The position numbers and the translations under genes were made by a program. DNA of 64,000 bases. Origin: Zancudomyces culisetae HAW-14-8 (taxonomy: Eukaryota > Fungi > Kickxellomycota). Below are positions 17,346 to 52,267 of this stretch, one piece after another. Every line of letters starts with the position of its first letter. Positions within the stretch are counted from its first letter, which is position 1. The stretch is from contig JBNJNM010000013.1 of NCBI GenBank assembly GCA_052426225.1, forward strand, positions 1 through 64,000. Reading direction: 5' to 3'. The notes under the pieces were generated by a model, which was not told where the DNA came from, ran no database searches, and saw only the letters and a list, made by a program, of their open reading frames with translations.

Positions 17346-17753
17346 ATGAAGACCATTATAATCGGAACAGCAGCTTTGGGACTAACCTTTGCAAACAGCA
17401 TGGGTGACTTGTCTTTACGCCAACACAATAGATACCCAATTGGACCAAACAGACTTTGTTCTTGTCGAAATCGCAGCGCTAGAATGAAGGTCGAAGTGTT
17501 CAAAGAGAAAAATCTCCAAAGTCCAGGTGAAACCCTAAATATAAGACCAAACAGATGTGTCTCATTACCAAGTGTCCTATCACTTCGATTTGACGATGGA
17601 CAACCAGGGCGCGGATGGGCTGCACTATGCCACAGTAATGACTGTAGTGGAAAATGTACAACTATAAGTAGAAAAGCCTGGCTTTACCCATATGATGTGG
17701 AAGCTGACAATGTTGGAGGACCTGCAAACTCTATGATTTGGTTCCTAGCATAG
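17346..17753 (+). CDS. Small secreted 4-Cys beta/gamma-crystallin-like protein, paralogue A (135 aa)
   Basis: Signal peptide, AAAATG start context, TATATAAA at 17255, and the family motif G-x4-C-x4-C-x-G-x-C-x4-R...S-x2-W shared with four other ORFs. Confidence 0.88.
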   Translation: MKTIIIGTAALGLTFANSMGDLSLRQHNRYPIGPNRLCSCRNRSARMKVEVFKEKNLQSPGETLNIRPNRCVSLPSVLSLRFDDGQPGRGWAALCHSNDCSGKCTTISRKAWLYPYDVEADNVGGPANSMIWFLA

Positions 17754-20387
17754 TTAGAGTCAATATTCGACTATTTTTAATGTATGGATATTTGATTTAG
17801 AGATAGAAAATCTTTTAAATATTAGAGCCAAAATCCATGAATAAAAATGTGCAGTGAAGTTCGTCAACAATAAATGATAATGTTTGGAGCAGAGTTGAAA
17901 AGTGGTTTTGCTAGGAATACATTTCAAATTGGTACAACCTAGATATTACTGTAACAGCCAGTAGATTTTACAGTTTGAAAGGATGTATATTTAAAAAAAG
18001 TGTAAGGATTTCATGTGACATCATTTATCACACTGAATGTTTTAATATAGATTGATAAATATGTTCAGCATTTATCTTCTCAAGCTTATAATATAGTTTT
18101 CAGTGTTAATTAAAGAGGTAAAAATGTGACGCATAATTATCTCATATAAGTAAATACCCGTAATATGAATAATTTGAGATTTAAAAGCATTGTCTAACAG
18201 TGCGAGAATACATGTATCTCTTTCACCTAACATGTGATTTATTCCGTGCAATTTTGTGTTAGGCTATTTAATATATCAAGTTTAATATGTTTAGTTGAAT
18301 GGAGTTTAAACAATTTTCATTGGGTAAATATTCAGAAACAATTATAGTATCATATTCCTGCGATACTTAGTTTTACAATGATAAGAATGATACATATTCT
18401 GATGGCATCTATTCATGACTTTTTAAACTACTATTTTATTTGGCATATTTTAATTATCTACTTATAAAGTGTTTTTTGTTTACCAAATGTATAGTCACTT
18501 ACTTTATTCTCTTTTTATTGATTTTAAAAATAGTCATATCCTTCGCTACATTCATAAATGATACAGTTTTTTTGTATAATTGGTAATGTTTAAAGTGTTG
18601 TTATTCTAAAATATGGTTTTAAATTATGGATGTAACATATTAGCTTTAATTCAAAATGTTACAAGGACAAAAATAAATAACTGTTTATAAAAAAATGTTT
18701 AGAAAAAGTGTTGTATGCTTGAAAGTTTTGAAAAACGCTAAAGGCTTATTACATCAACTTTGTAGCTTGGGTGTATGAGAATAAAAATATATTTTCAACT
18801 ATTTATTAATGTTATTCTTTACTTGTTAAAAAAAGTTATTAGCACAATCTGGACTATTATCAACTTATCAAAGTATATTATTATGAATTTAAAAAGCTAA
18901 ACAAAATATCAAATTATAGTTGTCCTAAACTTGTAAAGCATTAAATAAAACAAAAAGAATATTACCCAATAAACATAGCGAGAATCTCGTTTAATATAGA
19001 AAAAAATGAGTCAACTTCCGTTCATGAGGCCAAAAATAAATGTGAGAATTTTTAGGGCAAGTCTCGGGCATGTTATATTTACAAATCTTTTCAGCTCAAC
19101 TTCATGATCTCCGAAACTCTAAAATCTCAACACCCATACACTTTTACTATACATTTCTATCAAAAAAAAATTAAAGATGACCTTTTTATGAACAAATAGT
19201 GCGAGAGTGTGAGATCATACATTTCAATAAATAACCACCAAACCAATAGCTGTAGTATCGTAAATATTGTGATTGATCTAGATGATTACTACCTCACATT
19301 ATTTCTATATAAAAGTTAACATTCAATTATATTCTTTAGGCTCTAGTAAATTATCAAGTTCAGGTTTGCTAAGTTGATCGGCCTCAATTTTAATAAATTA
19401 ATGACTTTAGCTAGAACTAAAATAAAATCCCTGTCAGTGCGATAAATTAACTTTTTTTTGATCTAGTTCTTAATATGTATATTTGATTGTAACTTTTAAT
19501 AAACATAAATGACGTTTATAAAAGATCTAGAATGTTAAATAGAAGAAAGTGTACATAGTTTAATAATTATTTAATAGTAAAATAAAACTGGAATACTCAT
19601 GTTAAAAGTAAATATCAGAGAGAAGGTCAACTAAACTCAACTACCCACAAGCGAGCTGTATATTGTAGAAAATATGTATTTAAAATTCCATCTAACAAAA
19701 ATATAAAAATGTCAAAAATACCGTGATTTAGTTTAGTATCATTTCGTTGCACTCACAGATAGCTAACAAGCAAGAAGCAGTAATAAAATATAGTAGTGTT
19801 ATATGTCATAATAAAACTTCAGGCACAGGAATACAAATTAAAAAACTTAGAGGTACTGGCAGCCAAGATCTAACAGCAATTCGTTGTGTTTTTTCTAGTT
19901 AGCTAGTCACGCAGATGTAGGAGCTCGGTTATACAAACAAAATTAACACGGAATAAAGAGCCAGAGAATAGTACAGGATGGTTATAATCAAATTGTTGTG
20001 CCTTATTGCACTCTTTTCAGTTTCCGCTCAATCCCAAGATAGTGATCTAGCCAAATTAAAATCTTTAAAAAACTTTTTTCACATAATGGTAGTGTACTAA
20101 AAATAATAATTAAAATAATATAAAAATGAAAGGTTAAACTAACCTCCACACGGCCAACTTAGCCAAATACAAGGTATGTAAAAAAAAAGGTGAACTAGCC
20201 CCAAAGAACGTCTACCTTTCAAACTATAATGCAGGATTTGTAGATCTCAAATGTTGTCGTCGTAAAGTATGCAGACCTTACTGCCACCGTCACCGCCATC
20301 GAAAGTGTAGGCACTAGTGTAGGCAAAAGTATAGGCGAATGTTTTGGCCCCGCCAAAAATGTAGGCCATGACCACCACCACCACCAT

Positions 20388-21512
20388 TGTTTTAGAATAT
20401 ACATGTATCTTAACAATATTGAATATTAAATACAATATAATTAATTTATATTAATGATATACTTGTGTTTCAAATATTTTTATATTACAAGATTATATTA
20501 TTTATTTAATAATAAGTATCAGTTTAAAACATTAGATTGATACTCAAAATCAATAATAAACCTATCAACATTAATATTGTGTATATTAAATAATACGCTT
20601 TTTAGATTAAGTTATATATAAATAATTATTACAAGCTTAATTGTATATACGGAGATAATATACCTTTACAAGTAAAATTTGTTTGTATATCACATTAAAC
20701 GATAATAAAGATAATAACATGTATTATTGCATGATTACTGTGTGTTTTATACTAAATATTAATAATAGCTTTTATAAATTAACTGTGTGTTAATTTGTTA
20801 ATAATATCTTTACTTAGTATAATTTCGGTATCTAACACAGCAGTCACAGCTCCAAGAGCCACACCTGGTTCATGGGCAGTGGCAGCCCCATTTTAATACT
20901 CCTAAGAATAATTTTCGGGGTGGCAACAGCATCAGACCCCGAAAGTAAGGGGTTGACTGAAGCTCTTCCAGGAGGCATGGAAGAAGCTTACCGATCACCA
21001 ATGAGTACTCCAGGTGATCAAGGAAGGGTTCTGAATACCCTTTAATGCGCATTCTCGCACGGTCAAGCAGTGTTAGATACCAATATTATACACAATAATG
21101 ATGGTATTAACAAATTAACACACAGTTAATTTATAAAAGTTATTATTAATTATACTAGTTTAAAACACACAGTAATAATAAAATATTAGTTAATAATATC
21201 TTTATTATTGTTAAACGAGAATGACAAACATAATTGTTCATGAAAAGGAAATGAATCACCTTTTATACAATTAAGTTTGTTATAAATATTAATATAAAAC
21301 TTAAACTAGTAATAAAACCAATTATAATATACTATTAAGCGAACATCATTAATATGCACTATATTAATGTTTAAAACTAATAATATAATAATAATTAAAT
21401 ATATAAACTTATAATTAAATAATATTAATGATATACAAGATTATCATTAATAAACATTAATTTTTATGTATTTAATATACAATACTGTTGTGATACAAGT
21501 GTATTCATAACA
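20388..21512. repeat. Long inverted repeat: ~450-bp arms (20388-20837 and 21071-21512, each TGTT...AACA) around a 233-bp GC-richer spacer
   Basis: 34-nt perfect reverse-complement match 20770-20803 / 21105-21138, with similarity visible along the whole arms. Confidence 0.85.
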
Positions 21513-21844
21513 ACTAATAACATGATTTAATCCAATTAATGCTTTCAAGTTCAATCTCTTGATTAATTATTTGGTTAAAATGCAAACTTTTATTCCCCAT
21601 ATATGTAGATTATCTTTAATAAGATCGGCATACTAGAAAAGTCAGAATTAAAAAAACTTTGATATATATAGATTATTTAAAGCACCAGCTTGTACATTTG
21701 AACTTATAGCAGTAAAATAGTTTATTTCCACTTGCAATATTTAAATTAATAAATATCTATAGAGCAAGTGTCAAATCCAGTTTAGGTATTGAAACTTCTA
21801 TATACTAACTAGTAAAACCTTTTCAAATAGTTCTAAAATACCCA

Positions 21845-22255
21845 CTAGAGAGTCCATCCTACTGATTTTGCATAAGCACCAAGATCAATTCCTGGGATAT
21901 TATCTGGATAAAGTAGAATGCTTCTAGATGCGGTAAAGCAGTGCCCTTGACAGTCTGCCTCTACACAAAACGTAATATCTCCACTTCCTGGTTTACCATC
22001 GTCCATTTTTGCACTTCCGGTACTTGGAATGTTATAGCAGCGACCTGGTTTCAAATGTTTGATTTGACTTTTCCCTTGATAATGGGTTTTACTGAAAATC
22101 TCAAGCTTCATTTTTTTTTGATGATGACAACCGCAAAGGCGGTTGGGACTGTTGTCTGCTTGTTTGTTTTTGGCAGCTTGATTTGAATCTGCGATGCTGT
22201 ATGCACTGGTCATACCCAGGCTCAAGCACATCATGCTGAATACGGAGAACTTCAT
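21845..22255 (-). CDS. Small secreted 4-Cys beta/gamma-crystallin-like protein, paralogue B (136 aa)
   Basis: Signal peptide; shares PNRLCxC, DDG.PG.G and LYP with paralogue A; family Cys motif. Confidence 0.9.
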   Translation of the reverse strand: MKFSVFSMMCLSLGMTSAYSIADSNQAAKNKQADNSPNRLCGCHHQKKMKLEIFSKTHYQGKSQIKHLKPGRCYNIPSTGSAKMDDGKPGSGDITFCVEADCQGHCFTASRSILLYPDNIPGIDLGAYAKSVGWTL

Positions 22256-24689
22256 TTTTTGATTAACTTTTGAAAGATTTTTTCGTCTAATAAGTGAATT
22301 GTTTATTCTACTCGTGATATGTATTCTACTTTGGAGGGAATTGTAACCCCTTTTATACTTTTATTTCTCATGAAATATCTTACTTATACAAAACATCACT
22401 TCACTTTGTTAATATTGTAACGGGCTTATTGTTGCATTATACCTACACGTTTCTAGAATGTCAACTTTGAGCTACAAGTTAATATACTTTTCTAAATTCA
22501 AAAATGATAACCAATACGCTAAATTTAATTTTGAACGCTAGCCTCGACTTACAATTTTCGGTGTTTAATGTACTAAAAATTAATTAATTAATTATAAGTG
22601 GACTTAAACTCTAGGTTACAGTTTAATTAGTTAGCAAAACAAAAACGTTTAAATAAAGCATTTGTCTTTTAAATTAAAGCAGATCCGACTTATGCTTATT
22701 TGCACTTCCAGAGGTCTGCCCAGAATATAAATATAAGGCTTTTGTACATTTTTATCAATCATGTGAGGTCAACCTATGAAATAGTATGTCAGCTCACTAA
22801 TTTCTAGCAAATTTAATATCTTCATTTTATACAAGTACAAATATGGTTATCGTTAATAATTCAGAAATCTAGATTTTGTAGTCACGTAATGTGATTAGGG
22901 GTTATCTCAAATTCAAATGTAAACCTGCCGGGGTGAGTTTGAAACGGGCGTCAGGCTTGTATCAGAATCGAGTCGGTTAAGTCATTTAATTTATATGAAA
23001 CCGGACCCCAACTTTTACAAGGGTTAAATTACCCTTCGTTTTCAAACAGACCGAGAAATAAAATAAAAATAAGAAAGACACTTTACAATATTATCATAAT
23101 AATAATAATAATCTTAATATTTTGAATAGATTAAGGTTTGAGCATTAAAAAATAAAGAAAATTAAACGTAACTTGAAGAATAACTCTTGAACGTTATCCA
23201 GTACTGCGCCTAGTTACGGTGATGAGAGTTACCAGGTGATTATTTGTAAAGTGAACTACATTCAACAAGGACACTTTTAGTAAATACATTTTAGACTAGA
23301 TAGAAAAATAATAAACCTAGCCATAACACTTGATAATATTATCAGTACATAAAGTAAATAAATATGTTTAAAAAATGACAAGCAAGCATTATGAAGATGT
23401 GCTACTTTTCTTTATAAGTACGAGGTTTAGCGGAAAATATAAATTTTATCACCTTTTGAGGATACATATGAGCGAATGGTGAAGAATAGATAAGTGGTTA
23501 GACACAACATTCATTTTTTATAACTGAATTACAGGTAGTAAAGTAGCAACACAGGTTTTTGATAAATTTTTCTAATAATCTGCGCATTTCTGTCTGTTTT
23601 CTGTCTGTTTTCTGTGGGATATTATTAAAAAGTTATATATTAATATCAGGGTAAGCTATTCATAATACCTAAATGGCGCCAAAAAAAATTATCCTAGTCT
23701 ATTGTGCCTTTTCAGTAAGCTGCCTTTGTCTTTCAGGAATTTTCTATTTGTAAAAATAGTGTGTAAAAAAACATTGAAAAACACTCGTATTGAATAGAAA
23801 ACACCACTAGAATGTAGTTTCTTACTTTCGTGCCTGCAAAACCATAAACTCTTTGCGTTTAGTAAATAAATCTGCAAGTTTTGATGGGTTAGTATCCCAA
23901 GAGTTTTCTGGTTCTTGAGGAAGAGGTGATTTGTCTATTAAACTAGAATCAAGCTTTAGTCGATGAAACAGCGTATCAGAGTTCAATTTTGATACCGAGG
24001 TACTTGCTCCAGCGTTTATGTTGCTGGTAGAACTACTATTGTTGTTTGTATTTCGGGAATTTAGGTTTCCAAATCCTGATAAATCAAATGCATTTGTATG
24101 ACGGTTCCCAGATCGATTCGTATTAGCGTTTGTTTGTAGTGTTGGTAGCTATTCTTAAAAGTTATTTATATGACGGGTATTAGTATATTACTATGATATA
24201 ATGGCAACTACCTCTTGAGCAAATAATATATAAATGTCATACTGTTGCGCTGTTGGTTTTCCCTTTGACTGGACTATTGTGTTGCATCTCGGCTAATTAT
24301 CAAAGGTAGAGTTCATTAGCTTATTTTTTTATTATTTTTGTAGACTTAAGAGCTTGAAAGTACTTTATGAGTGTACCCGGATCGTGCTGGACACAATTAA
24401 AACAAATAAATATTTTAATTAACAGTATTTCAATCAACTAATATTCAACAAAAAAAATTTTAAAAATTATGATAACAGTTATCAATGAAATACAGATCGA
24501 ATAGTCACAGAAAAATAATAAAATTGAAATACTAAAAAAAATATTTTTTATTAAATAGTATATCGGTTGTTTGATATAAAAACAAACAGAACATAAAAAG
24601 GAATCAAACACCATAACCACAGGCAAGAACACAGTAAATCAATATTGAAACATACGTTAAATAAATATAGCTATAGTAGTTTTATTTAA

Positions 24690-25110
24690 ATAGTTATATA
24701 TAAACAAAGTAAGCCTCAATGAGGATTTCTTAGCTCTTTTAATAGTTCAAAATTTTATAAGAGTAAGAGAAAAGAAATAAAGAATACTTTAAAAGTAAAA
24801 TGTATTGGTTTTAGTTATAAAAAAAAAAGATAATAGTGCTACGGCTAGTTAAACTTATAAAACTTTAAATATTAAAATCTCAATCAAAATGTCAGGTCTT
24901 ATGCATAAACTGAAAACAGCATGGATCCAGCAGGCCAAGGATGAAGGCCGTTATTCATCAGACAGTGATCGCTCTGGAACCATCAATATGAAGGTGGACT
25001 CCAGAGAGTCACATGGCCCATTTAAAGAGCTTGTTGATCAAGCCTTTTTGCGTATGAGAAGCCTGACAACATGCGGGTATCAGACCGTTCTCTCTCAACT
25101 GGTCTTATAG
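24690..25110 (+). repeat. Dispersed repeat copy 2 with short ORF (MSGLMHKLKTAWIQQAKDEGRYSSDSDRSG...)
   Basis: Homologous to 15360-15830, including upstream non-coding motifs (ttagctctttt, gtgct.cggcta, aaaatctcaa). Confidence 0.6.
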
Positions 25111-26393: not shown

Positions 26394-26810
26394 ATGGTAA
26401 AATCAACACTCGCACTCTTCACTGCCGCAGTTGCCACAGTATCAGTAAATGCTGCATCCGCTCCAAGACCAAGAGCAAATGTTGGTCCTATGCAACCACC
26501 AATGGAACAGGTTCAGGACTTTGGAAGATATGCTTCACCATCTCGCCCTGCCTTTAACAACCGCTTCGCTGCACCAGCCTACCGCAAGCGTGCTGACGAG
26601 GAGGAGGAAGTTGCACCAGCTGACGACGATTCTGCTCAAACTGTTGATCCTTCAGCAGAAGGCGGTGATGCAGGAAATGGAACCGATGACCGTTGGTGGT
26701 ACGGATACTATGGATACCCATACTACGGCGGGTACTACGGATATCCATCGTATGGCTACGGTTACGGTTACGGTTACAGCTACCCATACTACGGTGGATA
26801 CTACTACTAA
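26394..26810 (+). CDS. Secreted precursor with Kex2 site (RKR), acidic spacer and C-terminal Tyr/Gly-rich peptide (138 aa)
   Basis: Signal peptide, GC-rich coding island, AAAATG start, GTATAAAA upstream at ~26237; the last 38 aa contain 20 Tyr and 11 Gly. Confidence 0.9.
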   Translation: MVKSTLALFTAAVATVSVNAASAPRPRANVGPMQPPMEQVQDFGRYASPSRPAFNNRFAAPAYRKRADEEEEVAPADDDSAQTVDPSAEGGDAGNGTDDRWWYGYYGYPYYGGYYGYPSYGYGYGYGYSYPYYGGYYY

Positions 26811-27416
26811 CTTGCCAGTCTTTAAAACTTTATTGGTTTTAGTCGTTACTTTAACTAATTCTAAGGGTCTTTATATATTATTTAAATAAATAATATCGAA
26901 CAACATACATGAAGATACAATATATTGCTGCATGAATCGATTAAAATTCAGAATTAGAACTTAAATAGCAATTAAATTACCAGTATCTAATTTATTCTGT
27001 TTACTAAATTAGTAATATTACCATAGGTAAAGTACACATAGTTTATTAAGATAATCGCCTTTGATCTACCTAAGGCAGAAAAGACATCATCTGACCAATT
27101 ACCAGTGAGTATGCTGTCTCTAGAGTTGCGGAAACAGACTTTTCATATTATGTTTTAAGAAATTTTTTACCTACTATCTTTTTAATATTTGTGTACTTGT
27201 TGTGACATTAAATTATACTATCAACTAAAATATACGTAAATACTAATGTTTGTGGATCATTTTGGCCTAGTTTTAAAGTAGAATATTGTAATTTATTTAT
27301 GCAAAGATTGGATACTTTAATTAATCTCAGCTTTTTAAGGCTAGAAAAATAATATTTTCATTCACTAAACTTGACTCTAAAGTGATAAAATATTTGTTAT
27401 AAAGGTGTATTAAAGA

Positions 27417-27812
27417 TTATTCGTTGGGGGCAGTACCCATTGACACCCATTTAATTGAAAGTGGACCAGATTTGAGATCTTCAGGGAAATTCCACATACC
27501 AGTTTGTAAAAACCTGGTATTTACTGTACACACACCTCTACAGTCGTTTTCTCTGCATAGCAGCATTCCTCCTGATCTATTCGTGGGATTAAGAAATTGC
27601 GCTGAGGTGCCCTGCTCAATGTTATAACACTTGTGTTTTCTCATTTGGAAGTCGTTTATTACATCTCCTGAAAAGCGGTAGCCTGAGAATACTTTAACGT
27701 GTAAGGTTGGTCGAGAGGACCCATGGTGGTGATGATGGCAATGGCCTGATACTAGCAGGGTTTGAGTAGCTGACAGAAGCTGGATAGCCAATGTATAACT
27801 TGAAACGCGCAT
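27417..27812 (-). CDS. Small secreted 4-Cys beta/gamma-crystallin-like protein, paralogue C (131 aa), His-rich mature N-terminus
   Basis: Signal peptide, HCHHHHH, VKVFSGYRFSG, KCYN, CRENDCRGVC, SIKW. Confidence 0.88.
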   Translation of the reverse strand: MRVSSYTLAIQLLSATQTLLVSGHCHHHHHGSSRPTLHVKVFSGYRFSGDVINDFQMRKHKCYNIEQGTSAQFLNPTNRSGGMLLCRENDCRGVCTVNTRFLQTGMWNFPEDLKSGPLSIKWVSMGTAPNE

Positions 27813-30143: not shown

Positions 30144-31823
30144 TTATCGAATCTTAAAGTACAACCCCTTGTTTATGCAAAAGTCGCTAAGGGATGTATA
30201 GTGAGAGAATGCGGGTTGTCCATGCTTGTTTTTTTTAACAGCATAATTGGCATGCACCTCGTATTTTCTAATGATCATTGCCAACATCAGCTTCATAAGC
30301 GCAGCTGCATATATTCTTGCTAAACAGACCCGATTCCCAGCACCCCACATTAAATTAGCCAACGAAGCATCTGTTAGTTTGAGACCAAGACGAATATGTC
30401 TCTTGTAGTCGAATTCATTCGCATTTGGTCCAAATATTTCGGGATCCCTATTATGTTCCTGAATGTTAAAACTCACATATTGATGTTTAGAAATACTCAC
30501 GCCATTAGACATCACTACTTCCTGGGTCGTGCAACGGGGCATGAATAAATCCGACCCCGAAAGTCTGATCGTTTCTTTAATGAACGCATCCAAGTACACC
30601 ATTTCGTCCAACATTTCAAATGGAATATGGTTGTTACCACCATTTTTTTCAATAAGCTCATTTTGTTCCTGCAGCAACTCTTTGTAGACGTCAGGCCTCA
30701 GACTAAGCTCTACAAATAAGTTAAACATCCGCCTTGATGCCACTTCCACACCAAGTGATACAGATACCTGTATGCAATACGCTACGCTCGTTAGCTCCGC
30801 TTGGAAAATGCTAAAATTGTCTGTAAAAAATTGTATTATATCAGTTGGTTTACTATATTCGGGAAGGTATTTTCTGCGGCTCGACTCAAGTTCAAAATAC
30901 TCATAAAAGTAGTTATTGCCCAAATACCCCGCAGTAAATAGTGTTGAAAAAAACTCTTGATTATTTACGTTTCCAAGCCTGGTCGGCTTCGTCACTTTTT
31001 TCAAGCTTTCAATCAAATTTCTGTCTCTTATTGCATATGGGCCTAAAAATCTAAATATTATAGCAAACCTAACCATATTTTTTACTGTCTCATACAAGTT
31101 GTTAACCACTACCTCATTTCCATTATACATGCTTCCAGAGGATATAATCTCTCTCCTGATTACTTGTTCCAGGGTCGGTTGGATTGCCTCCATCGATTCC
31201 TTCAAATCAACATATGACAGAAAATATAACAAGTATCTGCTGTATAGAATATCATTCACGTGCATTCCTCTGGCTAATATTGTGTATTTGTGGTGATTTT
31301 TTAGGAAAGCCCGATTTTTATTGAATATCGTCTCTGGATGCTTTACATATTCTGATGAAAACCTTCCGCCGATCAAAATACTTCTTCCTTCCTCCGAATT
31401 AACTATACACAGACTTTGGTTCATGTGCTTCCCATAAACCTTGCCTTTGCCTTTGTATTCCTTAGAAGAATTACGGCTAATACTAGCCTCCATGCATTTT
31501 ACCTTTTTTAAACCATAGGGCACGGCTAGTTCCTTTACTGCTTTCCGAATTTTTCCCGATATTTGGTAACAACACAGATAAAGCAAAATCATGTTCTTAA
31601 TAAACACCAGTATTTCTTGTAGCCATTGATCCGAGACGATGTATTTTAATAGCCATTTTATATCACATACCAATAATGGTATGTAAATAAGATTTGCCAG
31701 TATGTGTCTGTATTCGCTCTCAGTTACAAACAACACAAGGTCGTCAACAAACTGTATTGAAAATAATACACTCAGAATATAGCCGTGTATGTAAAAAATC
31801 AACCCCAGAACTGACCTTTCCAT
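30144..31823 (-). CDS. Cytochrome P450, divergent, intronless (559 aa)
   Basis: Hydrophobic N-terminus, ExxR (KETIR), heme motif WGAGNRVC, HNRDPEIFG; the I-helix lacks the usual Thr. Confidence 0.93.
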   Translation of the reverse strand: MERSVLGLIFYIHGYILSVLFSIQFVDDLVLFVTESEYRHILANLIYIPLLVCDIKWLLKYIVSDQWLQEILVFIKNMILLYLCCYQISGKIRKAVKELAVPYGLKKVKCMEASISRNSSKEYKGKGKVYGKHMNQSLCIVNSEEGRSILIGGRFSSEYVKHPETIFNKNRAFLKNHHKYTILARGMHVNDILYSRYLLYFLSYVDLKESMEAIQPTLEQVIRREIISSGSMYNGNEVVVNNLYETVKNMVRFAIIFRFLGPYAIRDRNLIESLKKVTKPTRLGNVNNQEFFSTLFTAGYLGNNYFYEYFELESSRRKYLPEYSKPTDIIQFFTDNFSIFQAELTSVAYCIQVSVSLGVEVASRRMFNLFVELSLRPDVYKELLQEQNELIEKNGGNNHIPFEMLDEMVYLDAFIKETIRLSGSDLFMPRCTTQEVVMSNGVSISKHQYVSFNIQEHNRDPEIFGPNANEFDYKRHIRLGLKLTDASLANLMWGAGNRVCLARIYAAALMKLMLAMIIRKYEVHANYAVKKNKHGQPAFSHYTSLSDFCINKGLYFKIR

Positions 31824-38329: not shown

Positions 38330-38809
38330 ATGTTCAAGTCATTATTAATCAGTGCTTTGCTCCTCGGTTCAACCTTAGCCAGTGCAGTAAACATGAGCGG
38401 TAACCAACAGAATCAAAATAATGATCTTACTAATTCCGAACACAACAAAAATCTCTCTGGCTGTGAATTTAATGATATGCATCGCCATCGTTGTTGCCGT
38501 GGTCGCTGCAAGGCCAAGAGAACAACTGTTAGATTGTACAAGGCTGCCGGTTTTGTTAATAGATACGAAAAGCGCAGTATCAGACGTGGAAAGTGCTACA
38601 ACACAAGAAAATTCGGATCAATCAAGGTCGGAAGGAAGAGTGGGTTGGATAAACCAGGAAAGGGAGTAATCTTGGTTTGCAAGGATACGGATTGTACCGG
38701 TAAATGTCAGATAGTTCGTAGATCATCAGCCAAGACTATTTCCAATATATCCGAAGTTGTAGGAAGAAGAGCTATTTCATTCGCTTGGCTCAGGGTTAGG
38801 AGAACCTAA
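38330..38809 (+). CDS. Small secreted, highly cationic 4-Cys beta/gamma-crystallin-like protein, paralogue D (159 aa)
   Basis: Signal peptide, N/Q-rich propeptide, VRLYKAAGF, KCYN, CKDTDCTGKC, SFAW. Confidence 0.9.
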   Translation: MFKSLLISALLLGSTLASAVNMSGNQQNQNNDLTNSEHNKNLSGCEFNDMHRHRCCRGRCKAKRTTVRLYKAAGFVNRYEKRSIRRGKCYNTRKFGSIKVGRKSGLDKPGKGVILVCKDTDCTGKCQIVRRSSAKTISNISEVVGRRAISFAWLRVRRT

Positions 38810-41170: not shown

Positions 41171-41731
41171 TTAATGTCTGTGTCCGTGTCCGTGTCCATG
41201 TCTGTGACCCCATCTGTGACGCCATCTGTGACCGTGTCTGTATCTGTGTCTTCTACCAAATCTATCAAAGTAAAAGCCATCATAGAATGGGTAGTATGAT
41301 GGGTATGTTTCTACACCAACAACTCCTACTCCACCAACGGCACCAGCTCCGTATGCAGTGTTGACAGCTCCAACTGCTCCAACTGCTCCAACGGCACCAG
41401 CATCATATGTAGTGCCAACAGTGCCAACAGTGCCAACAGCACCACTATCATATCCTGTTGCTACGGCTGCACCAGTTCCATAGGTAGTACCAACAGCTCC
41501 GACGGCCCCGACAGCACCAACGGCTCCAACTGTAACTGGTACTGCTACTGCGTATGCAACTGGGTAATCGTACCAGATTCCATTTCTCCAGTATCTGTGT
41601 CTGTGTCTGTATCCTCGGTGGCCGTGACCGTGGCGGCCTCCATGATGTCCTCCGTGACCACCGCTACGTTCTGCAATAGCGGTTCCAGCTGAAAGTGCTA
41701 ATACGGCTAGGGAAAGGGTTAATGATTTCAT
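41171..41731 (-). CDS. Secreted low-complexity block protein: His/Arg/Gly ends, Tyr-rich flanks, (GAV)n core (186 aa)
   Basis: Signal peptide, GC-rich coding island, AAAATG start, intact ORF. Confidence 0.9.
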   Translation of the reverse strand: MKSLTLSLAVLALSAGTAIAERSGGHGGHHGGRHGHGHRGYRHRHRYWRNGIWYDYPVAYAVAVPVTVGAVGAVGAVGAVGTTYGTGAAVATGYDSGAVGTVGTVGTTYDAGAVGAVGAVGAVNTAYGAGAVGGVGVVGVETYPSYYPFYDGFYFDRFGRRHRYRHGHRWRHRWGHRHGHGHGHRH

Positions 41732-43402: not shown

Positions 43403-46400
43403 TTAGTTGCTACAGTTAGAAATGCTCTGGCAAGAGAATGTTGGGTTGAAAACAGTGGCAGTGCCTTTGAATGGTGTCATAGCCAATGAAGTCATGTTAA
43501 AGTTGGAAACCTTGTATGTAGACTTGAGCGAGTTGTTGATAAATATTTGAAGCTGAGAGTTCTTGTAAACAATCTTGATGTCTTGCGAGTCGGCTCTTGT
43601 GAAAATATAGCTTCGTTTAACCAAAGCGTATTTACCCTTCTTGATGGAACTGATACCAGATGACAAACCAAATTGAGCTTCAACTACACCGTTAGGGCTG
43701 TAGTATCCGCTGTTGTCCATGAGCGCAACAAAGAAGTCAGTGGTAGCAGAGATGCTAGCAGTGAACTCAAAGTCACTTGTATCACATGGAATTGTAAGGG
43801 CCTGCTTGAAATCATAATCTTTGTTCTTGTTGGTGGAAGATACAATGATATTGGAGCCAACAGAAGTGGAATCACAGGTTGATGAGCTCGAACTGGTGAA
43901 GCTGGTTGATGATGACTCGGTTGATGATGGCTCGGTTGATGATGACTCGGTTGAGCTTGATTCTGTTGAGGATGATTCTGTTGAGGATGATTCTGCTGAT
44001 GATGATTCAGTTGATGATGACTCGGTTGAGCTTGATTCAGTTGAGGATGATTCTGCTGATGATGATTCAGTTGATGATGACTCGGTTGAGCTTGATTCTG
44101 TTGAGGATGATTCTGTTGATGAAGACTCGGTTGAGGATGATTCTGTTGATGAAGAATCGGTTGATGATGACTCGATTGATGAAGAATCGGTTGATGATGA
44201 CTCGGTTGATGATGACTCGGTTGATGATGACTCGGTTGATGATGACTCGGTTGAGCTTGATTCAGTTGAAGATGGCTCGGTTGATGAAAACTCGGTTGAG
44301 CTTGATTCTGTTGAGCTTGATTCAGTTGAGGATGGCTCGGTTGAGGATGATTCTGTTGATGATGACTCGGTTGAGGATGATTCGGTTGAGCTTGATTCAG
44401 TTGAAGATGGCTCGGTTGATGATGACTCTGTTGATGATGATTCTGTTGATGAAGAATCGGTTGAGCTTGACTCAGTTGATGATGAGTCAGTTGATGAAGA
44501 ATCGGTTGAGCTTGACTCAGTTGATGATGAGTCAGTTGATGAAGAATCGGTTGAGCTTGACTCAGTTGATGATGACTCAGTTGAGCTTGATTCAGTTGAA
44601 GATGGCTCGGTTGATGATGACTCTGTTGATGATGATTCTGTTGATGAAGAATCGGTTGAGCTTGACTCAGTTGATGATGAGTCAGTTGATGAAGAATCGG
44701 TTGAGCTTGACTCAGTTGATGATGAGTCAGTTGATGAAGAATCGGTTGAGCTTGACTCAGTTGATGATGACCCAGTTGATGAAGAATCGGTTGAGCTTGA
44801 CTCAGTTGATGATGACTCAGTTGATGAAGACTCGGTTGAGCTTGATTCTGTTGAGCTTGATTCAGTTGAGCTTGACTCAGTTGATGATGAGTCTGTTGAT
44901 GAAGAATCGGTTGAGCTTGACTCAGTTGATGATGACTCAGTTGATGAAGACTCGGTTGAGCTTGATTCTGTTGAGCTTGATTCAGTTGAGCTTGACTCAG
45001 TTGATGATGAGTCTGTTGATGAAGAATCGGTTGAGCTTGACTCAGTTGATGATGACTCAGTTGATGAAGACTCGGTTGAGCTTGATTCTGTTGAGCTTGA
45101 TTCAGTTGAGGATGGCTCGGTTGATGAAGAATCGGTTGATGAAGACTCGGTTGAGCTTGACTCAGTTGATGATGATTCTGTTGATGAAGAATCGGTTGAT
45201 GAAGACTCAGTTGAAGATGATTCTGTTGATGAAGAATCGGTTGATGATGACTCTGTTGAAGATGATTCTGTTGATGATGACTCTGTTGAGGATGATTCGG
45301 TTGATGATGATTCTGTTGATGAAGAATCGGTTGATGATGATTCTGTTGATGATGATTCTGTTGATGATGATTCTGTTGATGATGATTCTGTTGATGATGA
45401 CTCGGTTGATGATGACTCTGTTGATGATGAATCGGTTGATGATGACTCGGTTGATGAAGACTCAGTTGATGATGATTCAGTTGATGATGATTCTGTTGAT
45501 GATGACTCGGTTGATGATGACTCGGTTGATGATGACTCGGTTGATGATGATTCGGTTGATGATGACTCGGTTGATGATGGCTCGGTTGATGATGACTCAG
45601 TTGATGATGATTCAGTTGATGATGATTCAGTTGATGATGATTCTGTTGATGATGACTCGGTTGATGATGACTCGGTTGATGATGATTCGGTTGATGATGA
45701 CTCGGTTGATGATGGCTCGGTTGATGATGGCTCGGTTGATGAAGACTCGGTTGAGCTTGACTCAGTTGATGATGATTCTGTTGATGAAGAATCGGTTGAT
45801 GAAGACTCAGTTGAAGATGATTCTGTTGATGAAGAATCGGTTGATGAAGACTCGGTTGAGCTTGACTCAGTTGATGATGATTCTGTTGATGAAGAATCGG
45901 TTGATGAAGACTCAGTTGAAGATGATTCTGTTGATGAAGAATCGGTTGATGAAGAATCGGTTGATGATGGCTCGGTTGAGCTTGATTCAGTTGAGGATGA
46001 TTCTGTTGATGATGACTCTGTTGAGGATGATTCGGTTGAGCTTGATTCTGTTAAGGGTGATTCTGTTGAAGATGACTCTGTTGATGAAGACTCGGTTGAG
46101 CTTGACTCAGTTGATGATGAGTCTGTTGATGAAGAATCGGTTGAGCTTGACTCAGTTGATGAAGACTCGGTTGAGGATGGCTCGGTTGATGATGAGTCTG
46201 TTGATGAAGAATCGGTTGAGCTTGACTCAGTTGATGAAGACTCGGTTGAGGATGGCTCGGTTGATGATGATTCTGTTGATGATGATTCTGTTGATGATGA
46301 CTCAGTTGATGATGACTCAGTTGATGAAGACTCGGTTGAGCTTGACTCTGTTGATGAAGACTCGGTTGAGCTTGATTCAGTTGAAGATGGCTCGGTTGAT

Positions 46401-47155
46401 GAAGACTCGGTTGAGCTTGATTCAGTTGAGTTTGATTCTGTTGATGAAGAATCGGTTGAAGATGGCTCGGTTGAGGATGATTCTGTTGATGAAGAATCGG
46501 TTGATGAAGACTCGGTTGAGGATGATTCAGCTGATGATGATTCAGTTGATGATGGACTTACACAGGTAGATTCGTTACAGCTGTATGCCACATTTTGAAC
46601 CTTTGCTGAATCATTCTCAGCTCCAAATGCAAGCCAAACGGTTGGTGAATTTGTAAATGTGCTGACGTCATAATCACTTGAGGATAGTGTTAGTACTGGT
46701 GTACTGCTTCCTACCAACCCAATGTTGACACCTGAGCTATCGATTTGAACATATATTTTTTGAGTATCTGCCGCACCTGACATGACATCTTCTTCCTTGG
46801 AGTACACCGAAGATCCAATGTACCATGTTCCTGTATTTACACCAATCACACCTTCAATAACATCACTACCAGTGAGCAAAGTTTTTTGTGTGCTGATTGC
46901 AAAATAAATATCAGAAGTTTGATCAATATCAAACGTAACAAGGTAGTCTTGTGCTGGGCAAGTAACATCAATAGCATTGTCCCAGCTGTAATTGATAACT
47001 GAACTATCACCAGATCCCTGTATAATCTCTATTTGACTGATCGAGTCTGAACAGTTTACACTTCCAGCTCCACTTGAGGTAGATGCTCTCACTATCGGTG
47101 AAAGCAAGCTGGCTAATATCAATGATATGGATGCTGTATATGCTTGTGGTCTCAT
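43403..47155 (-). CDS. Secreted mucin/adhesin-like protein (1250 aa): globular domain, ~175 (E/D)SSST repeats, related globular domain
   Basis: Signal peptide, Cys-bounded beta-rich terminal domains, long Ser/Thr stalk, no obvious GPI or TM tail. Confidence 0.93.
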   Translation of the reverse strand: MRPQAYTASISLILASLLSPIVRASTSSGAGSVNCSDSISQIEIIQGSGDSSVINYSWDNAIDVTCPAQDYLVTFDIDQTSDIYFAISTQKTLLTGSDVIEGVIGVNTGTWYIGSSVYSKEEDVMSGAADTQKIYVQIDSSGVNIGLVGSSTPVLTLSSSDYDVSTFTNSPTVWLAFGAENDSAKVQNVAYSCNESTCVSPSSTESSSAESSSTESSSTDSSSTESSSTEPSSTDSSSTESNSTESSSTESSSTEPSSTESSSTESSSTESSSTESSSTESSSTESSSTESSSTESSSTEPSSTESSSTESSSTDSSSTDSSSTEPSSTESSSTESSSTDSSSTDSSSTESSSTESSSTESSSTESPLTESSSTESSSTESSSTESSSTESSSTEPSSTDSSSTDSSSTESSSTESSSTDSSSTESSSTESSSTESSSTDSSSTESSSTESSSTDSSSTESSSTESSSTESSSTEPSSTEPSSTESSSTESSSTESSSTESSSTESSSTESSSTESSSTESSSTEPSSTESSSTESSSTESSSTESSSTESSSTESSSTESSSTESSSTESSSTDSSSTESSSTESSSTESSSTESSSTESSSTESSSTDSSSTESSSTESSSTESSSTESSSTESSSTDSSSTESSSTESSSTDSSSTESSSTESSSTESSSTDSSSTEPSSTESSSTESSSTESSSTESSSTESSSTDSSSTDSSSTESSSTESSSTESSSTESSSTESSSTESSSTDSSSTDSSSTESSSTESSSTESSSTESSSTESSSTESSSTDSSSTGSSSTESSSTDSSSTDSSSTESSSTDSSSTDSSSTESSSTDSSSTESSSTESSSTEPSSTESSSTESSSTESSSTDSSSTDSSSTESSSTDSSSTDSSSTESSSTDSSSTESSSTESSSTEPSSTESSSTESSSTESSSTESSSTEPSSTESSSTESSSTEFSSTEPSSTESSSTESSSTESSSTESSSTESSSTDSSSIESSSTDSSSTESSSTESSSTESSSTESSSTESSSTESSSAESSSTESSSTESSSTESSSAESSSTESSSTESSSTESSSTEPSSTESSSTSFTSSSSSTCDSTSVGSNIIVSSTNKNKDYDFKQALTIPCDTSDFEFTASISATTDFFVALMDNSGYYSPNGVVEAQFGLSSGISSIKKGKYALVKRSYIFTRADSQDIKIVYKNSQLQIFINNSLKSTYKVSNFNMTSLAMTPFKGTATVFNPTFSCQSISNCSN
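43907..46553. repeat. Coding 15-bp minisatellite (about 175 units) with higher-order duplications
   Basis: Units such as gttgatgatgactcg / gttgagcttgattca; near-identical 120-bp blocks at ~44780-45100. Confidence 0.97.
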
Positions 47156-48578
47156 TTTTATTGAAGCCTCTGGTTGAAGTATAGAAAGTTACTTATTCGT
47201 AATGAATGTAAAATGACTATGAATTTTGATTGTCTATTCTGGTAAATAGTAATGGTTTATATACAAATCTCCTCCATTTTTTTTCGGTCTATTAACCCTA
47301 TACATCAACTCCAATTTAGTGTTCTAATTTTAAATAAAGTTTATAAATATAACGCTCTTCAGCTCTTTTTCACGATATCTTTAGCATCATCTATTTATAG
47401 TTTTGAAGATATAGAGCAATTATGTTAACATTGAAAGTTTTTTTGTAAGGTAGAGGGAAAAGGCGATTTATAATTTAATCGAAAAATATATTGGAATTAT
47501 GGCATTTTGAATCCAAAAAGTTTTTTTTTATTTTGATCAAAGAGGGCAAAAAAATAGCGAATGAATCATTAGCATTTACACAATGTCTTGTTTCACTCAT
47601 AGTGGATGTATTACGATCATTTTCTTATAACAATGCATATTTGCTTTAATTTTATGTAGACCTACTGATTCTATTTCTAGATTATAATTTTATAACAATG
47701 TCGCTAAAACTATCATGAGGTAGCACCTCTACCACGTAAATACGTGATACCAGACCAAAAACAACAATCCGTCTGTTTTACTCTGAAAATCTTAAGATCG
47801 GGCAAACATTTGGATTCAACTTTTAAGGCTTTTACTATCAACCATGTAACTATAAATTCACTGGTGTTTTTAAACATGCTAATAACTTATTAATCTTTTG
47901 AAAGATCGTTTTCAACTTTTCTGGCTACAAACTCCTCATTGACCTATAGTACATGGTTAAAAATTAGTAGTTTAAACAAAAATAGAACCTCGGGATGTAA
48001 CTACTTGAAGTAATGTTAAAAATCATAGAATTTGCTCTATTTTTGGCCTCTAACAACCACTTATCTAAGCTATTTTGTAAAATGAAATATGCATAGCGAA
48101 CAAAATTTTAACAAAATAGACGTTTTTTTATGCCAACTAGTCGTAATTGCTTGGAGTAATTTTTTATAAATCTGAGTCTTTAATCCTGTTCTGAATTACA
48201 ATATGTTATATATTTTCATAAAACTTTTTAATTAAAAAATAAGCTAATAGTTGTAATTGTTATAAATCTTAATCCAAATACAATTAAATGTATTCTCCAC
48301 TGAATTTCATCATTTTCATCAAATAATTTCAACTTTGGAAACCTAGCATATCCATAGTTCAATAACCCCAAAAATAAATAGATTCGTTCGCTAATTTTTA
48401 CGGAACCTACTTTGGAACCTAAAATATTGTATAAGGATTTTGAATAAATTAGCACATTATTAGGTAAAACTAAAATTCAGAAACCCACCAAATATAAAAT
48501 GCTATACATATTAATAGATATTCAACATTATAGGAAGAACAATAAATCTCTATTGAAAACTACCAGGTTCACGACCAA

Positions 48579-49965
48579 TCAGACTAAGGAGTTAGTGGGA
48601 TGGCTTTCGGGTTTCCTATTCATAAACATTGTAGATAAACTAGGGCAATTAGAGAAAAGAGTGGTGATGGCAGAGTGATCAGTAGACCTTACAAATGAAA
48701 GGTTTGGTGTGTGTAGGTTTTTGCATGTTGGAAGAGTAACTGTCGGTGGTGTTTTCAGTTGAGAATTGTTTGTGCCTGTGTTATTTTTACCTTTGCTGCT
48801 ATTATTATCCTCGTCTGTACTGAAAAGAAAAGTACCAGAAAAGGCAGAAAGGCCATTGTTACTTAAAAATTGATCCGCAGAGTGTAGACTCAAATATTGC
48901 AGAGTAGAGCCAGAATGCCTGAGACTGGAAATTAAAGCATTGTCACCAAGATCGTAAACTCCACCCAAATCCAAATGAACGAGTGAAAAACCGCTTAATT
49001 CGTTTTCCACTAGCAGAATCATAAAATCTCAATAACCCATTCGCATCTATTTTTGTGCAGTCATACAACACTAGGTCTGTTCTTTGTTCCTGCGTTGGTG
49101 TTAAGAAGAGCTGAAGTGTGTCGTTATCCAAAAGCCGATATTTACTAATAATCCTACACACTTTATTCATGGCATCTGAAGAGATATCTTCAAATGAAGT
49201 GAAATCCTTTATATGTTTCCCAATTACTCGAACACATAAATCCTGCAAACTGGGAATACCCAAATCTATCTCTAATAACCCGTCTTCAGTTTTCACCACC
49301 TTCTTTTTCCGCGTTGTCTTTTTCATTCCAGTTCCGTTGTTTATCTTTGCTGTATTTGTGGCTGCTCTTACATTTTTTCTAAGCTGTGACACAGAACTGA
49401 CTGACACGCCTTGTTTTTTTAACTCGCGATTTTGTTTCGCTTGTTCATATTTTTTCATGTATTTGTCACAGGTTGGACATAGTATCCTTCCTTTACCATT
49501 ATCATCCATTGACCCTTTCCGTACCAAGAATTTGGCTTTACACATTGAACAATACTCAGCGCGACCACCCTTTCTCGCTGAACTGGTGTTCAACCCTTCA
49601 TTATCTCTGTTTGAGGATTCAATTACAAGTCTTTTTTTTCTTTTGTTTCCTTCCACATCGCTTTCGTAGTCTTTTCCCTTGGATTTGCTCCCCTTTAGAT
49701 CAATCTTGATTTTCTTGTTTTTACTTTTACTGTTGCTACTACGGGTTACTCTCTTTCCAATACTTGACTCCTCTACACCCTCTTCACCACTGGTTTCCTC
49801 ACTTTCTATGACATTTTGCTCCTGGTCTTCCTCCCCTTCGCTCTCATTGTTACTTTCTTGTATTTGTTGGATTTCTTCATTTTGACCTTCGCCTCCTTCT
49901 TCCAAATCGCTATTACTTGCTTGAAACCTTTCTCGAATGTTTTCATTTGTGATTCCCTAATTCCT
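48579..49965 (-). pseudogene. RAD7: RAD7-like nucleotide-excision-repair LRR protein, fragmentary and frameshifted
   Basis: GITNENIRER N-terminal motif, CxxC...CxxC, PSLQDLCVRVIGKHI...LYDCTKID, then a frame change at ~49020 jumping to late LRRs (RHSGSTLQYLSL, LSFVR). No clear first exon. Confidence 0.7.
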
Positions 49966-51817
49966 GTTTTTTTACTTCAAATATATCCTTTGATAAATCC
50001 TATTATTCTTATACACATCTACATTTCACATAAATAATTTTTCCTCTAAGAATCTCAATGATACCCATAAATAATTATGAAAATACCTTTAAAAAGCTAA
50101 TAGATGTCCGGCTTTGCCAACACGCCTAACTTTTCTTCATTCTTATACGCTATTGTTTTTTGGAAATGATTAAATATGCATTTTAGAGTTCTGATTCCAT
50201 TGAATTTCGTACTCATACATTTGAGATCTTTAACCAATTTATAAAGTCGATCTCAAATATAATATATCTAATATTTCATTACTCTTCATAAATGAGTATA
50301 CCACATTGCAAACACGCAATCAACTTGGAAATATTATTACATTAAAAATATATGGGTCAATATTCATAAAGTACCAGCATTTTACTCAATAAAATAAAAG
50401 TACTTTCTGTACATAAACTCACTATTCCATCTTTTCATATAATATTTATTTTTACAGTTTCCTTAATACGTTTTCAATCGATATACCCTTTATGATCATT
50501 TCATTATACATCTTGTATTCTAATGTGTTTTATTTTACCTTTCTGGAATGGATATCTTTACTTTGGATTCATATCGTGACTTTTGTATTTTTCTCTATTT
50601 TCTATTGGAATTAAATTATTCCTATTATCACTAGTTGATAATTGTTATATCAGTCGAATTTAAGCTTCGGATTTCTCAAATAAATAAACATAACTTTTAC
50701 ATGCAAAACTAATATTAAGCTAGTTCAAACATAGCTGGTTTACTCAAAATATACGTCATAGCTTTTTTGTATAGCTTTTTTTTCTCACAGTCACAGGTCA
50801 TGGATATAACAACTTGAATAATCCTTTATTCTAATTTCCTAGTCTAGTCTCAATATAAGAACATCCACCAAGTACTCAAATAGAAATAATTTGATAATAT
50901 TGCCATTACTTGAACCCAGGCATTTAACAACAAATAAATACCCCCTAAATCGATTCTTTTAATTAGAGGGTAATTTATTGATATTCTGGGCCGAGACAGA
51001 AAAATTGATCTACTATCCAAGTAAAGTACATACTATGTTGTTTGCAAATCAGTAAATATTTTGAGCGTATCTAGGTAAATATTTTTTGGTTTTTTCAATG
51101 TGCGAATATCTTATAACACATATATTGCCTATTTCAAACTAATTGGATTTTGTACCAGGTCAAGCACATTTTTCCATACCTTTTCAAGTTCGAGATATTG
51201 AAAAAATAAACAAATGGGATCACCTTAGCAAAAAATGCAAATTGTGGGTGGTATTGTAATGAACTTTGGAGTATGTAGTGACAAGAGCGAATGTTAATTT
51301 AAAAAAATGTAATAAATAAAATATGAATACAAACTATATTGTTGTTATAGCTGGGATAAATGGCCAAAAAAAAAAGACAAAACTAGTTTTATACTTTTTC
51401 TAGGGCCAACAAGCCAACAATATCTTAAAAAGTATGCAACATTGTTATTAAAGAATCTTTCGCGATGATCAATATGTTTAGTTTAATATTGCTACTGCTT
51501 ATCACTTTTTATCTCGAATAAATTAATTAATATTTGTGTAACTCAAAAAAGCATGAGCCTAGGCACTTGTAAAATAAACATTGATAGCTGTTTAGACTAC
51601 TATTATTTAAAGAATAACAAAAACAAAGTTAATATTAAGGCCAGAATATTAATACTAGTGGATGAACATACTTTGGTATTAATATGTTTTCTAGTAGCCT
51701 CTTCAGTTGTGAAAGTATATAAACCACAAAAATTTTCAAGATTTCTAAAAGTCCATATCGCATCCCTTTAAGGCTATACAATCTAAATTAGAACAAAATC
51801 AAGAAAACCTCCCAAAA

Positions 51818-52267
51818 ATGATCAAGTCAGCAGTCCTAACCGCTCTGGTACTTAGCTCAACATTTGCTTACAGTGTACAGGATTCACAGAATGCACAGAA
51901 TGCACAGAATGCACAGAATCAAGGTGTACAAGGGTCAGGCAAAAGCAGTGTCAATGAGTCCAAGTTTAATGAGATGCGTCCCAAAAAAAGAAGGATGCAA
52001 ATGATCCTATTTCGCTCTACCAAGTTTAGACTACCACAAGGCACTTTCTATGCCAGACCAAACAAATGCTATTCGGCGTCTCAGTTTAGAGGCGTGAGAA
52101 TGGGTAATGTGCGTGGAAAGAAAGGTGTTGTGATGTTTTGCACTCTGCCTAATTGTATGGGCAGATGTCATGTAGTATCTAGAAGAATTACAAGTCAGAT
52201 TAGTGACTTTTCTTATCAAATCAGAGGTTATGCGACATCTTACGCTTGGATTTCTCCATATTTTTAA
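51818..52267 (+). CDS. Small secreted, cationic 4-Cys beta/gamma-crystallin-like protein, paralogue E (149 aa)
   Basis: Signal peptide, (QNA)3 propeptide, KKRR, ILFRSTKF, KCYS, CTLPNCMGRC, SYAW; TATATAAA at 51716. Confidence 0.9.
   Translation: MIKSAVLTALVLSSTFAYSVQDSQNAQNAQNAQNQGVQGSGKSSVNESKFNEMRPKKRRMQMILFRSTKFRLPQGTFYARPNKCYSASQFRGVRMGNVRGKKGVVMFCTLPNCMGRCHVVSRRITSQISDFSYQIRGYATSYAWISPYF

Follow-up and report, generated by a model that had tools for sequence, protein, structure and literature searches.

Whether a handful of small, highly divergent reading frames near a chromosome end constitutes a genuine gene family, which fold its products adopt, and what they may do in the gut of an insect larva are the questions raised by a stretch of DNA from the fungus Zancudomyces culisetae HAW-14-8 (the window hereafter; 64,000 nucleotides, positions 1–64,000 of contig JBNJNM010000013.1). 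The first-pass annotation, made from the letters alone, had singled out five open reading frames (ORFs) in this window as encoding small secreted proteins resembling β/γ-crystallins. Taking the structural and the family parts together, we are highly confident that the five ORFs are intact genes kept by selection, that they belong to a lineage-specific family of 150 or more loci, and that the encoded domain has the predicted double-Greek-key β/γ-crystallin fold. This fold, together with a sequence link that is weak yet significant, assigns the proteins to the superfamily. The five ORFs are as follows.

17346–17753, forward strand: ORF1, subfamily A, 135 residues (family profile E-value, 2.8e-54)
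21845–22255, reverse strand: ORF2, subfamily B, 136 residues (E-value, 2.2e-55)
27417–27812, reverse strand: ORF3, subfamily C, 131 residues (E-value, 2.2e-42)
38330–38809, forward strand: ORF4, subfamily D, 159 residues (E-value, 9.2e-52)
51818–52267, forward strand: ORF5, subfamily E, 149 residues (E-value, 3.2e-56)

The five reading frames and their gene family

The ORFs lie at the starts and on the strands first proposed for them, and each is open without interruption from its initial Met, which begins a hydrophobic N-terminus, as far as the stop codon, and encodes 131–159 residues. Since this single frame spans the full family profile (positions 1–134/136) in every case, no intron is needed in any of the five, and the description of the genes as intronless holds. 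Pairwise identity among the five proteins is 21–36%, and the E-values obtained by BLASTP (1e-8 for ORF3 against ORF5, and 4e-12 for ORF1 against ORF4) indicate that their homology is not due to chance. The shared motif proposed at the outset is borne out by the five-ORF alignment, in which Cys71, Gly90, Cys95, Cys100, Gly102, Cys104, Arg109, Ser129, and Trp132 (ORF1 numbering) are invariant. The subgroup marks were also recovered, namely PNRLCxC and DDGxPGxG in ORF1 and ORF2, and FN[DE]M together with richness in Lys and Arg in ORF4 and ORF5.

A six-frame search of the 27.1-Mb genome with the five-sequence profile, in which 150 loci were scored out of 203 candidates, showed that the family is five-membered in the window only; the genome holds at least 150 loci, all with E-values of 2.7e-15 or better, and in-frame stops occur in only 10 of the 150, the other 140 being open. 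The subtelomeric character ascribed to the family was upheld on this scale, with 97 of the 150 loci located within 80 kb of a contig end as against about 12 expected, and its members are predicted to be secreted, with signal peptides judged by a hydrophobicity heuristic. About 50 of the 150 loci are internal, some of them in tandem segmental repeats (e.g., C6, 1.04–1.08 Mb, with a spacing of 19.1 kb), and the internal dispersed copies of the ORF4 type have flanks in common over at least 1.9 kb (79–99% identity). Many copies in the genome are near-identical to one another: ORF1 has near-identical copies at no fewer than eight other chromosome ends, and proteins identical to ORF2 are encoded at the C7, C11, C14, and C21 ends.

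Selection on the mature domain was estimated as the ratio of nonsynonymous to synonymous substitution rates (dN/dS) by the Nei–Gojobori method (NG86) for 86 distinct family sequences (43 genome loci and 43 public sequences), a sample that is biased towards the best-scoring loci and whose pairs are non-independent. Paralogue pairs with dS values of 0.05–0.4 gave median dN/dS values of 0.10–0.27, which argue that the genes are functional and constrained. At dS values of 0.05 and above, dN/dS stayed at or below 1 in every pair, and among the youngest pairs (dS, 0.01–0.05) about 1 of 24 exceeded this value. In sliding windows, dN/dS reached about 1 in two short stretches only (residues 103–120 of the ORF1 type and residues 61–72 of the ORF4 type), and comparisons between subfamilies were saturated (dS above 1.5). 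Recent paralogues are under purifying selection. The word ‘diversifying’, originally applied to the family, appears from these comparisons to fit its deep divergence only, with positive selection being no demonstrated part of it.

Scoring of the family profile by HMMER against 1.84 billion representative proteins returned 36 matches, 32 of which belong to the family (31 from Z. culisetae and one from Smittium mucronatum). The latter protein (P0008; OLY84601.1) is the sole homologue found outside Z. culisetae among these representatives, and has three tandem crystallin-fold domains in one 296-residue, predicted secreted protein. A further profile search with 39 sequences returned only Z. culisetae proteins. 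The public proteins P0001 (OMH82290.1), P0002, and P0003, all annotated as ‘hypothetical proteins’ of Z. culisetae, are near-identical to ORF5, ORF4, and ORF1, respectively, and the assembly GCA_001969505.1 encodes ORF2 exactly. In a Pfam scan of the five ORFs and 39 members, no family scored above threshold; Crystall (PF00030) gave no match in either set even at E-values up to 10, and neither Inhibitor_I36 (PF03995), again at E-values up to 10, nor the killer-toxin family of Pfam matched any of the 39 members. A Conotoxin match to ORF4 (18 bits; cutoff, 25.1) is confined to the signal peptide and propeptide and was treated as compositional. Papers dealing with the genomics of Harpellales, the fungal group of Z. 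culisetae, make no mention of the family, and no paper describing it was found. As far as these searches reach, the family has no published description and no Pfam entry, and is almost confined to one species.

Predicted fold, cysteine signature and precursor architecture

The crystallin-like nature suggested at first was corroborated by three independent lines, namely a profile search of protein sequences, a profile–profile alignment, and structure models. Among the same 1.84 billion representatives, the family profile also matched two bacterial proteins, P0033 (E-value, 1.7e-5) and P0034 (E-value, 2.7e-4), which are bona fide Crystall proteins (E-values to PF00030, 7e-45 and 3e-36, respectively), and alignment of the family domain with the six domains of P0033 and P0034 by hhalign gave a probability of 88.5% (E-value, 2.7e-6). 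The ESM-feature neighbours of the family include Crystall and Inhibitor_I36 clusters. An AlphaFold (AF2) model of ORF4 built from a 39-sequence alignment contains eight strands, with a predicted local distance difference test (pLDDT) score of about 90–97 over residues 61–159 except for one inserted loop; the model of ORF1, based on a shallower alignment, likewise contains eight strands, with a pLDDT of about 88 for the domain. The ORF4 model was superposed on γD-crystallin by VIA-align with a Z-score of 8.6 (root-mean-squared deviation (rmsd), 2.4 Å over 81 residues), and all 50 entries among the matches listed were β/γ-crystallins. When the same two-Greek-key model was compared with 48,161 representative PDB chains in a search independent of Foldseek, the first 14 chains all belonged to the β/γ-crystallin superfamily, including lens crystallins, a Ciona crystallin, IPSE/alpha-1 (Z-score, 7.4), Protein S (7.3), the Neurospora abundant perithecial protein (APP; 7.2), geodin, clostrillin, and spherulin 3a (PDB entry ID, 1hdf; 7.0). 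For the ORF1 model, Foldseek returned the same set of crystallins as for ORF4, with IPSE/alpha-1 at the top. Sequence searches of the PDB with both profiles yielded chance matches only (a ferredoxin oxidoreductase, E-value 1.6; an antibody heavy chain, E-value 0.056), and the killer toxin structure 1wkt was not among the matches of either profile. A recent horizontal transfer from bacteria was also considered and discarded, because the link to bacterial crystallins (E-value of about 1e-5) is too weak.

The four-Cys core is kept in 78 of the 86 sequences. Among these 78, the aromatic pair of the first Greek key (key 1), [FY]-x4-[FYL], is found in 71 and its Gly in only 11, and S-x2-W, containing the Ser of the second key (key 2), is found in 76. 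The S-x2-W element is invariant among the five ORFs and at least 90% conserved in the wider alignment, as is the Gly of key 2, and the Ser column of key 1 is at least 70% conserved. The superfamily signature reads [YFW]-x4-[YF]-x-G, whereas key 2 of the family carries Cys at both aromatic positions. In the hhalign alignment, the [FY] of key 1 pairs with Phe or Tyr of the bacterial domains, and G-x4-C-x4-C-x-G-x-C of the family lies over G-x-W-x-L-C-x4-[YFLG]-x-G-x-C of the bacterial proteins; in the second Greek key, the two aromatic positions are therefore both taken by Cys, in agreement with what had been proposed from the five sequences. The outer C-x8-C pair is common to the family and to P0033 and P0034, and the four conserved Cys residues probably form two disulfides, for which C117–C126 and C89–C122 (ORF4 numbering) are our guess at the pairing. 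The calcium-binding motif [ND][ND]xx[ST]S is present in P0033 and P0034 and occurs in none of the 78 four-Cys sequences; this microbial motif is lost in the family.

Compared with Crystall proteins (lens crystallins, Protein S, spherulin 3a, nitrollin, clostrillin, and APP), the family has the same double-Greek-key fold of about 85–95 residues (for the ORF4 model, Z-scores of 7–8.6 and rmsd of 2.4–3 Å over 75–83 residues), and keeps the aromatic pair of key 1, the Gly of key 2, and the Ser of each key. It resembles the bacterial Crystall members in the Cys at the first aromatic position of key 2 and in the C-x8-C pair. Unlike Crystall proteins, its members fall below the Pfam threshold, have both key 2 aromatics replaced by Cys, and are devoid of the calcium motif; they are single-domain, predicted secreted prepro-proteins, hyper-cationic in subfamilies D and E, and are present in 150 or more copies in a single small genome.

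The product of each gene has three parts, namely a signal peptide, a propeptide, and a single domain of about 90 residues with four Cys. A signal-peptide-like hydrophobic N-terminus was recognised in 65 of the 86 sequences, many of the remainder being truncated gene models, and a dibasic [KR]R site is located no more than 25 residues before the domain in half of the four-Cys sequences (39 of 78). These features suggest that the proteins are secreted and that a Kex2-type protease may process them at the dibasic site ending the propeptide; such a site is present in ORF4 and ORF5 and is not clear in ORF1–ORF3. Briefly, the signal peptide of ORF1 is followed by an N-terminal extension with PNRLCSC and by the domain (residues 49–135; nucleotides 17490–17750), which has a net charge of +1. 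The domain of ORF2 (residues 51–136; nucleotides 21848–22105) shows a perfect first Greek key, F-x4-Y-x-G, and ORF3 has a His-rich segment (HCHHHHHG) after the signal peptide and a domain (residues 39–131; nucleotides 27420–27698) with the first key F-x4-F-x-G. In ORF4, the signal peptide is followed by an FNDM propeptide ending in KAKR and the domain (residues 67–159; nucleotides 38528–38806; net charge, +20; isoelectric point (pI), 11.2), and in ORF5 by an (NAQ)n/FNEM propeptide ending in KKRR and the domain (residues 62–149; nucleotides 52001–52264; net charge, +13; pI, 10.5). Across the ORF4- and ORF5-like (D and E) members, the mature domains have net charges of +13 to +26 and pI values of 10.4–11.8. 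The propeptides of the internal ORF4-like copies are 60–78 residues long and are built from acidic LADSEYNND-type repeats in varying number (net charge, −4 to −11), after which come the conserved FNDM motif and KAKR; examples of such dispersed copies (L045–L061) are found at G000:C6:1043258, C11:2036489, and C14:109675. A propeptide motif, [FP]-N-x-[LM], situated 8–15 residues before the domain (alignment columns of about 95–100), recurs across very divergent subfamilies and may be a processing or sorting signal.

Chromosome end and neighbouring genes

The start of the window contains the following features.

1–3300, unstranded: chromosome end, (CCCTAA)n flanking a noisy C-rich stretch
1–660 and about 2870–3300, unstranded: telomere repeats (CCCTAA)n, read directly from the sequence

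The presence of (CCCTAA)n at the window start places the five ORFs in a subtelomeric setting. Between the two repeat blocks, about 2 kb (780–2870) is extremely C-rich and non-repetitive (GC content, 0.62; GC skew, −0.79), and this stretch is probably long-read basecalling noise within the telomere and not biology. Broken transposon ORFs lie beside the telomere at 4425–8828 (DUF4939/Ty3_capsid, RT_RNaseH_2, and rve with Integrase_H2C2), so that at least 4.4–8.8 kb looks like a Ty3/gypsy long terminal repeat element, and a DDE_3 transposase fragment is found at 13932–14387. The region of 14–54 kb is a mosaic of blocks with 86–97% identity to other chromosome ends; the trading of blocks between subtelomeres would be a likely route for copying and varying the gene set.

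Several other genes are interspersed with the five ORFs. A 138-residue putative secreted precursor with a Tyr/Gly-rich tail (GYGYGYGY...) and no Pfam match is encoded at 26394–26810 on the forward strand. An intronless gene for a 559-residue cytochrome P450 (PF00067; E-value, 2e-26) lies on the reverse strand at 30144–31823 amid the genes for secreted proteins, and parts of the surrounding block are found again both internally and at other chromosome ends. On the same strand, 43403–47155 encodes a 1250-residue predicted secreted protein, in which about 880 residues of SSSTE-type Ser/Thr repeats are placed between two globular ends in a mucin- or adhesin-like manner; the long ORFs antisense to it are repeat artefacts. 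Also on the reverse strand, 41171–41731 encodes a predicted secreted protein of 186 residues, whose ends are rich in His, Gly, and Arg and whose central part is (GAVGAV)n. This gene has about 15 copies in the genome, most of which are located 2–3 kb from an ORF4-type crystallin-fold gene. A toxin–immunity pairing of the two was considered and rejected, because several copies of the 186-residue gene are disrupted and the majority of dispersed D-type genes have no such partner; we read the association as co-duplication of a block, and not as an obligate partnership.

Candidate functions and relation to known proteins

Harpellales live attached to the hindgut cuticle of their hosts. Z. culisetae, a member of this group, inhabits the hindgut of mosquito larvae with its thallus fixed to the cuticle (PMC5954228). 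Tentatively, and giving it slightly less than an even chance, we prefer an antimicrobial, killer-toxin-like action of the family in the gut lumen. Once secreted into the larval hindgut, the proteins would be compact domains that resist proteases; the anionic propeptides may keep the hyper-cationic D and E domains harmless inside the producer, and after cleavage these domains would attack competing gut microbes at their anionic envelopes or walls, in a manner similar to WmKT/HM-1 and MiAMP1. This proposal derives from the secretory prepro design, the combination of a cationic domain with an anionic propeptide, the fold common to WmKT, MiAMP1, and SKLP, and the literature on fungal effectors. 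The pairing of a cationic domain with an anionic propeptide is typical of antimicrobial-peptide precursors. In secreted orphan candidate effectors of fungi, the β/γ-crystallin/WmKT fold is a recognised structural class among the toxin-like folds (PMC10462633).

With regard to individual toxins, the family shares with WmKT/HM-1 from Williopsis (Cyberlindnera) mrakii (PDB entry ID, 1wkt) the features of a fungal, basic, predicted secreted, single-domain protein, and 81 of 88 residues were aligned with the ORF4 model (Z-score, 5.7). WmKT/HM-1 is a prepro-protein processed at a dibasic site and stabilised by disulfides among its ten Cys residues, and kills sensitive yeasts by inhibiting β-1,3-glucan synthesis. 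However, there is no detectable sequence similarity between them, the core of the family has four Cys against ten in WmKT, WmKT is not known to form a large gene family, and it is a weaker structural match than the canonical crystallins. The family resembles WmKT/HM-1 in design and is not a member of its sequence family. MiAMP1 from Macadamia (1c01), a highly basic antimicrobial protein, and SKLP from Streptomyces (1f53) are also small secreted proteins with the crystallin fold; all 76 residues of MiAMP1 were aligned (Z-score, 5.8), and SKLP gave a Z-score of 3.8. These two differ in having other cysteine frameworks and no sequence link, and come from different kingdoms. IPSE/alpha-1 from the eggs of Schistosoma mansoni (4el6) is, like the family proteins, a secreted single crystallin-fold domain from an animal-dwelling symbiont or parasite, although identity is 12%, and IgE binding and nuclear targeting are functions of IPSE. 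The ‘Crystallin’ orphan candidate effectors of plant-pathogenic Dikarya (Derbyshire and Raffaele 2023, PMC10462633) are similarly secreted, double-Greek-key proteins with little sequence conservation. In that study, massive expansions were rare (PMC10462633), whereas the present family, from an early-diverging commensal of insect guts, numbers at least 150 copies; the likeness is one of fold.

Several observations weigh against an antimicrobial role. The domains of the ORF1-, ORF2-, and ORF3-like members (subfamilies A, B, and C) carry net charges of +1 to +7 and are near neutral, so that an antimicrobial mechanism based on charge could account for only part of the family. The ORF4 model is nearer to the canonical crystallins and IPSE/alpha-1 (Z-scores, 7.4–8.6) than to WmKT, MiAMP1, and SKLP, and a common fold, here a predicted one, does not show a common function: the nearest structures are the non-toxic crystallins, Protein S, APP, and IPSE/alpha-1. 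Gene-wide diversifying selection, as expected of an arsenal in an arms race, was not seen in the dN/dS values of paralogues, and a search for transcript-derived contigs returned only the public genome assembly or nothing. Moreover, Harpellales are commensals and are reported to possess fewer secreted proteins than insect pathogens (PMC5954228). More speculative, and in our view doubtful though possible, is the extended proposal that the subtelomeres house an arsenal of hyper-stable crystallin-fold toxins, whose charge classes might be directed to different gut microbes or to the host and by which the fungus might shape the larval gut microbiota, built on a new cysteine-for-aromatic version of the Greek key with its own propeptide signal, [FP]-N-x-[LM].

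Among the alternatives to an antimicrobial action, the proteins might be host-directed effectors or adhesins that bind the cuticle or epithelium of the mosquito hindgut or enter host cells, acting in attachment or in modulation of the host response, which would make them resemble IPSE/alpha-1. The attached life of the fungus, the tendency of strongly basic proteins to adhere to anionic surfaces, the high structural rank of IPSE/alpha-1 (top Foldseek match for ORF1; aligned over 86 residues for ORF4), and the presence of adhesive-looking secreted genes in the same subtelomere (the mucin-like protein and the Tyr/Gly-rich precursor) are consistent with this idea; yet no host-binding motif was identified in the family, Z. 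culisetae is a broad-host commensal, and the acidic propeptide with a cationic domain is more typical of antimicrobial precursors, and we regard a host-directed role as unlikely. Bulk expression from many near-identical copies would suit proteins with a structural or stress-related role in the wall, spores, or holdfast matrix of the fungus, analogous to Protein S of the Myxococcus spore coat, spherulin 3a of Physarum cysts, and APP of Neurospora, all of which are close matches of the ORF4 model, and one public homologue (P0027; 312 residues) has a long Ser/Thr/Val/Ala-rich N-terminal region resembling wall proteins. We nevertheless hold a structural role to be distinctly unlikely, as the calcium motif used by those structural proteins is missing throughout the 78 four-Cys sequences, and neither the deep divergence of the subfamilies nor the hyper-cationic charge is expected of a bulk matrix protein.

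Protease inhibitors that shield the thallus from larval proteases, as exemplified by the Streptomyces metalloproteinase inhibitor (Inhibitor_I36), would suit a protease-rich gut, and the bacterial relatives P0033 and P0034 also match Inhibitor_I36, whose clusters occur among the ESM-feature neighbours. These bacterial matches may, however, reflect only the relatedness of I36 and Crystall; with 0 of 39 members matching I36 and no reactive-site loop identified, we consider inhibition improbable. Finally, the ORFs could be non-functional, either chance frames or decaying passengers of subtelomeric repeats, in line with their position in duplicated blocks adjoining broken transposons and with the failure to find a transcript-derived contig. 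Such decay is hardly credible in view of the dN/dS values of 0.1–0.3, the 140 open loci, the persistence of the Cys and fold signature at 20–36% identity, and the confidence of the predicted fold.

The fold of the family is known, and the family is new by its unusual signature and its exceptional copy number. Its variant of the Greek-key signature has a probable disulfide framework in place of the aromatic corner residues. Crystallin-fold proteins secreted by fungi are now beginning to be charted, and the family extends this picture to a lineage that diverged early and to an unusually large expansion. As public locus tags run to only about g8200, the family could account for roughly 2% of the genes and be one of the largest families. 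Harpellales are widespread in the guts of mosquito, black-fly, and midge larvae, and, to our knowledge, how they interact with their host and with co-resident microbes has hardly been described. In comparative genomic work, they have been depicted as having few secreted proteins (PMC5954228). An undescribed family of at least 150 mostly intact and maintained genes offers a concrete and easily testable handle on the interactions of Harpellales in the gut.

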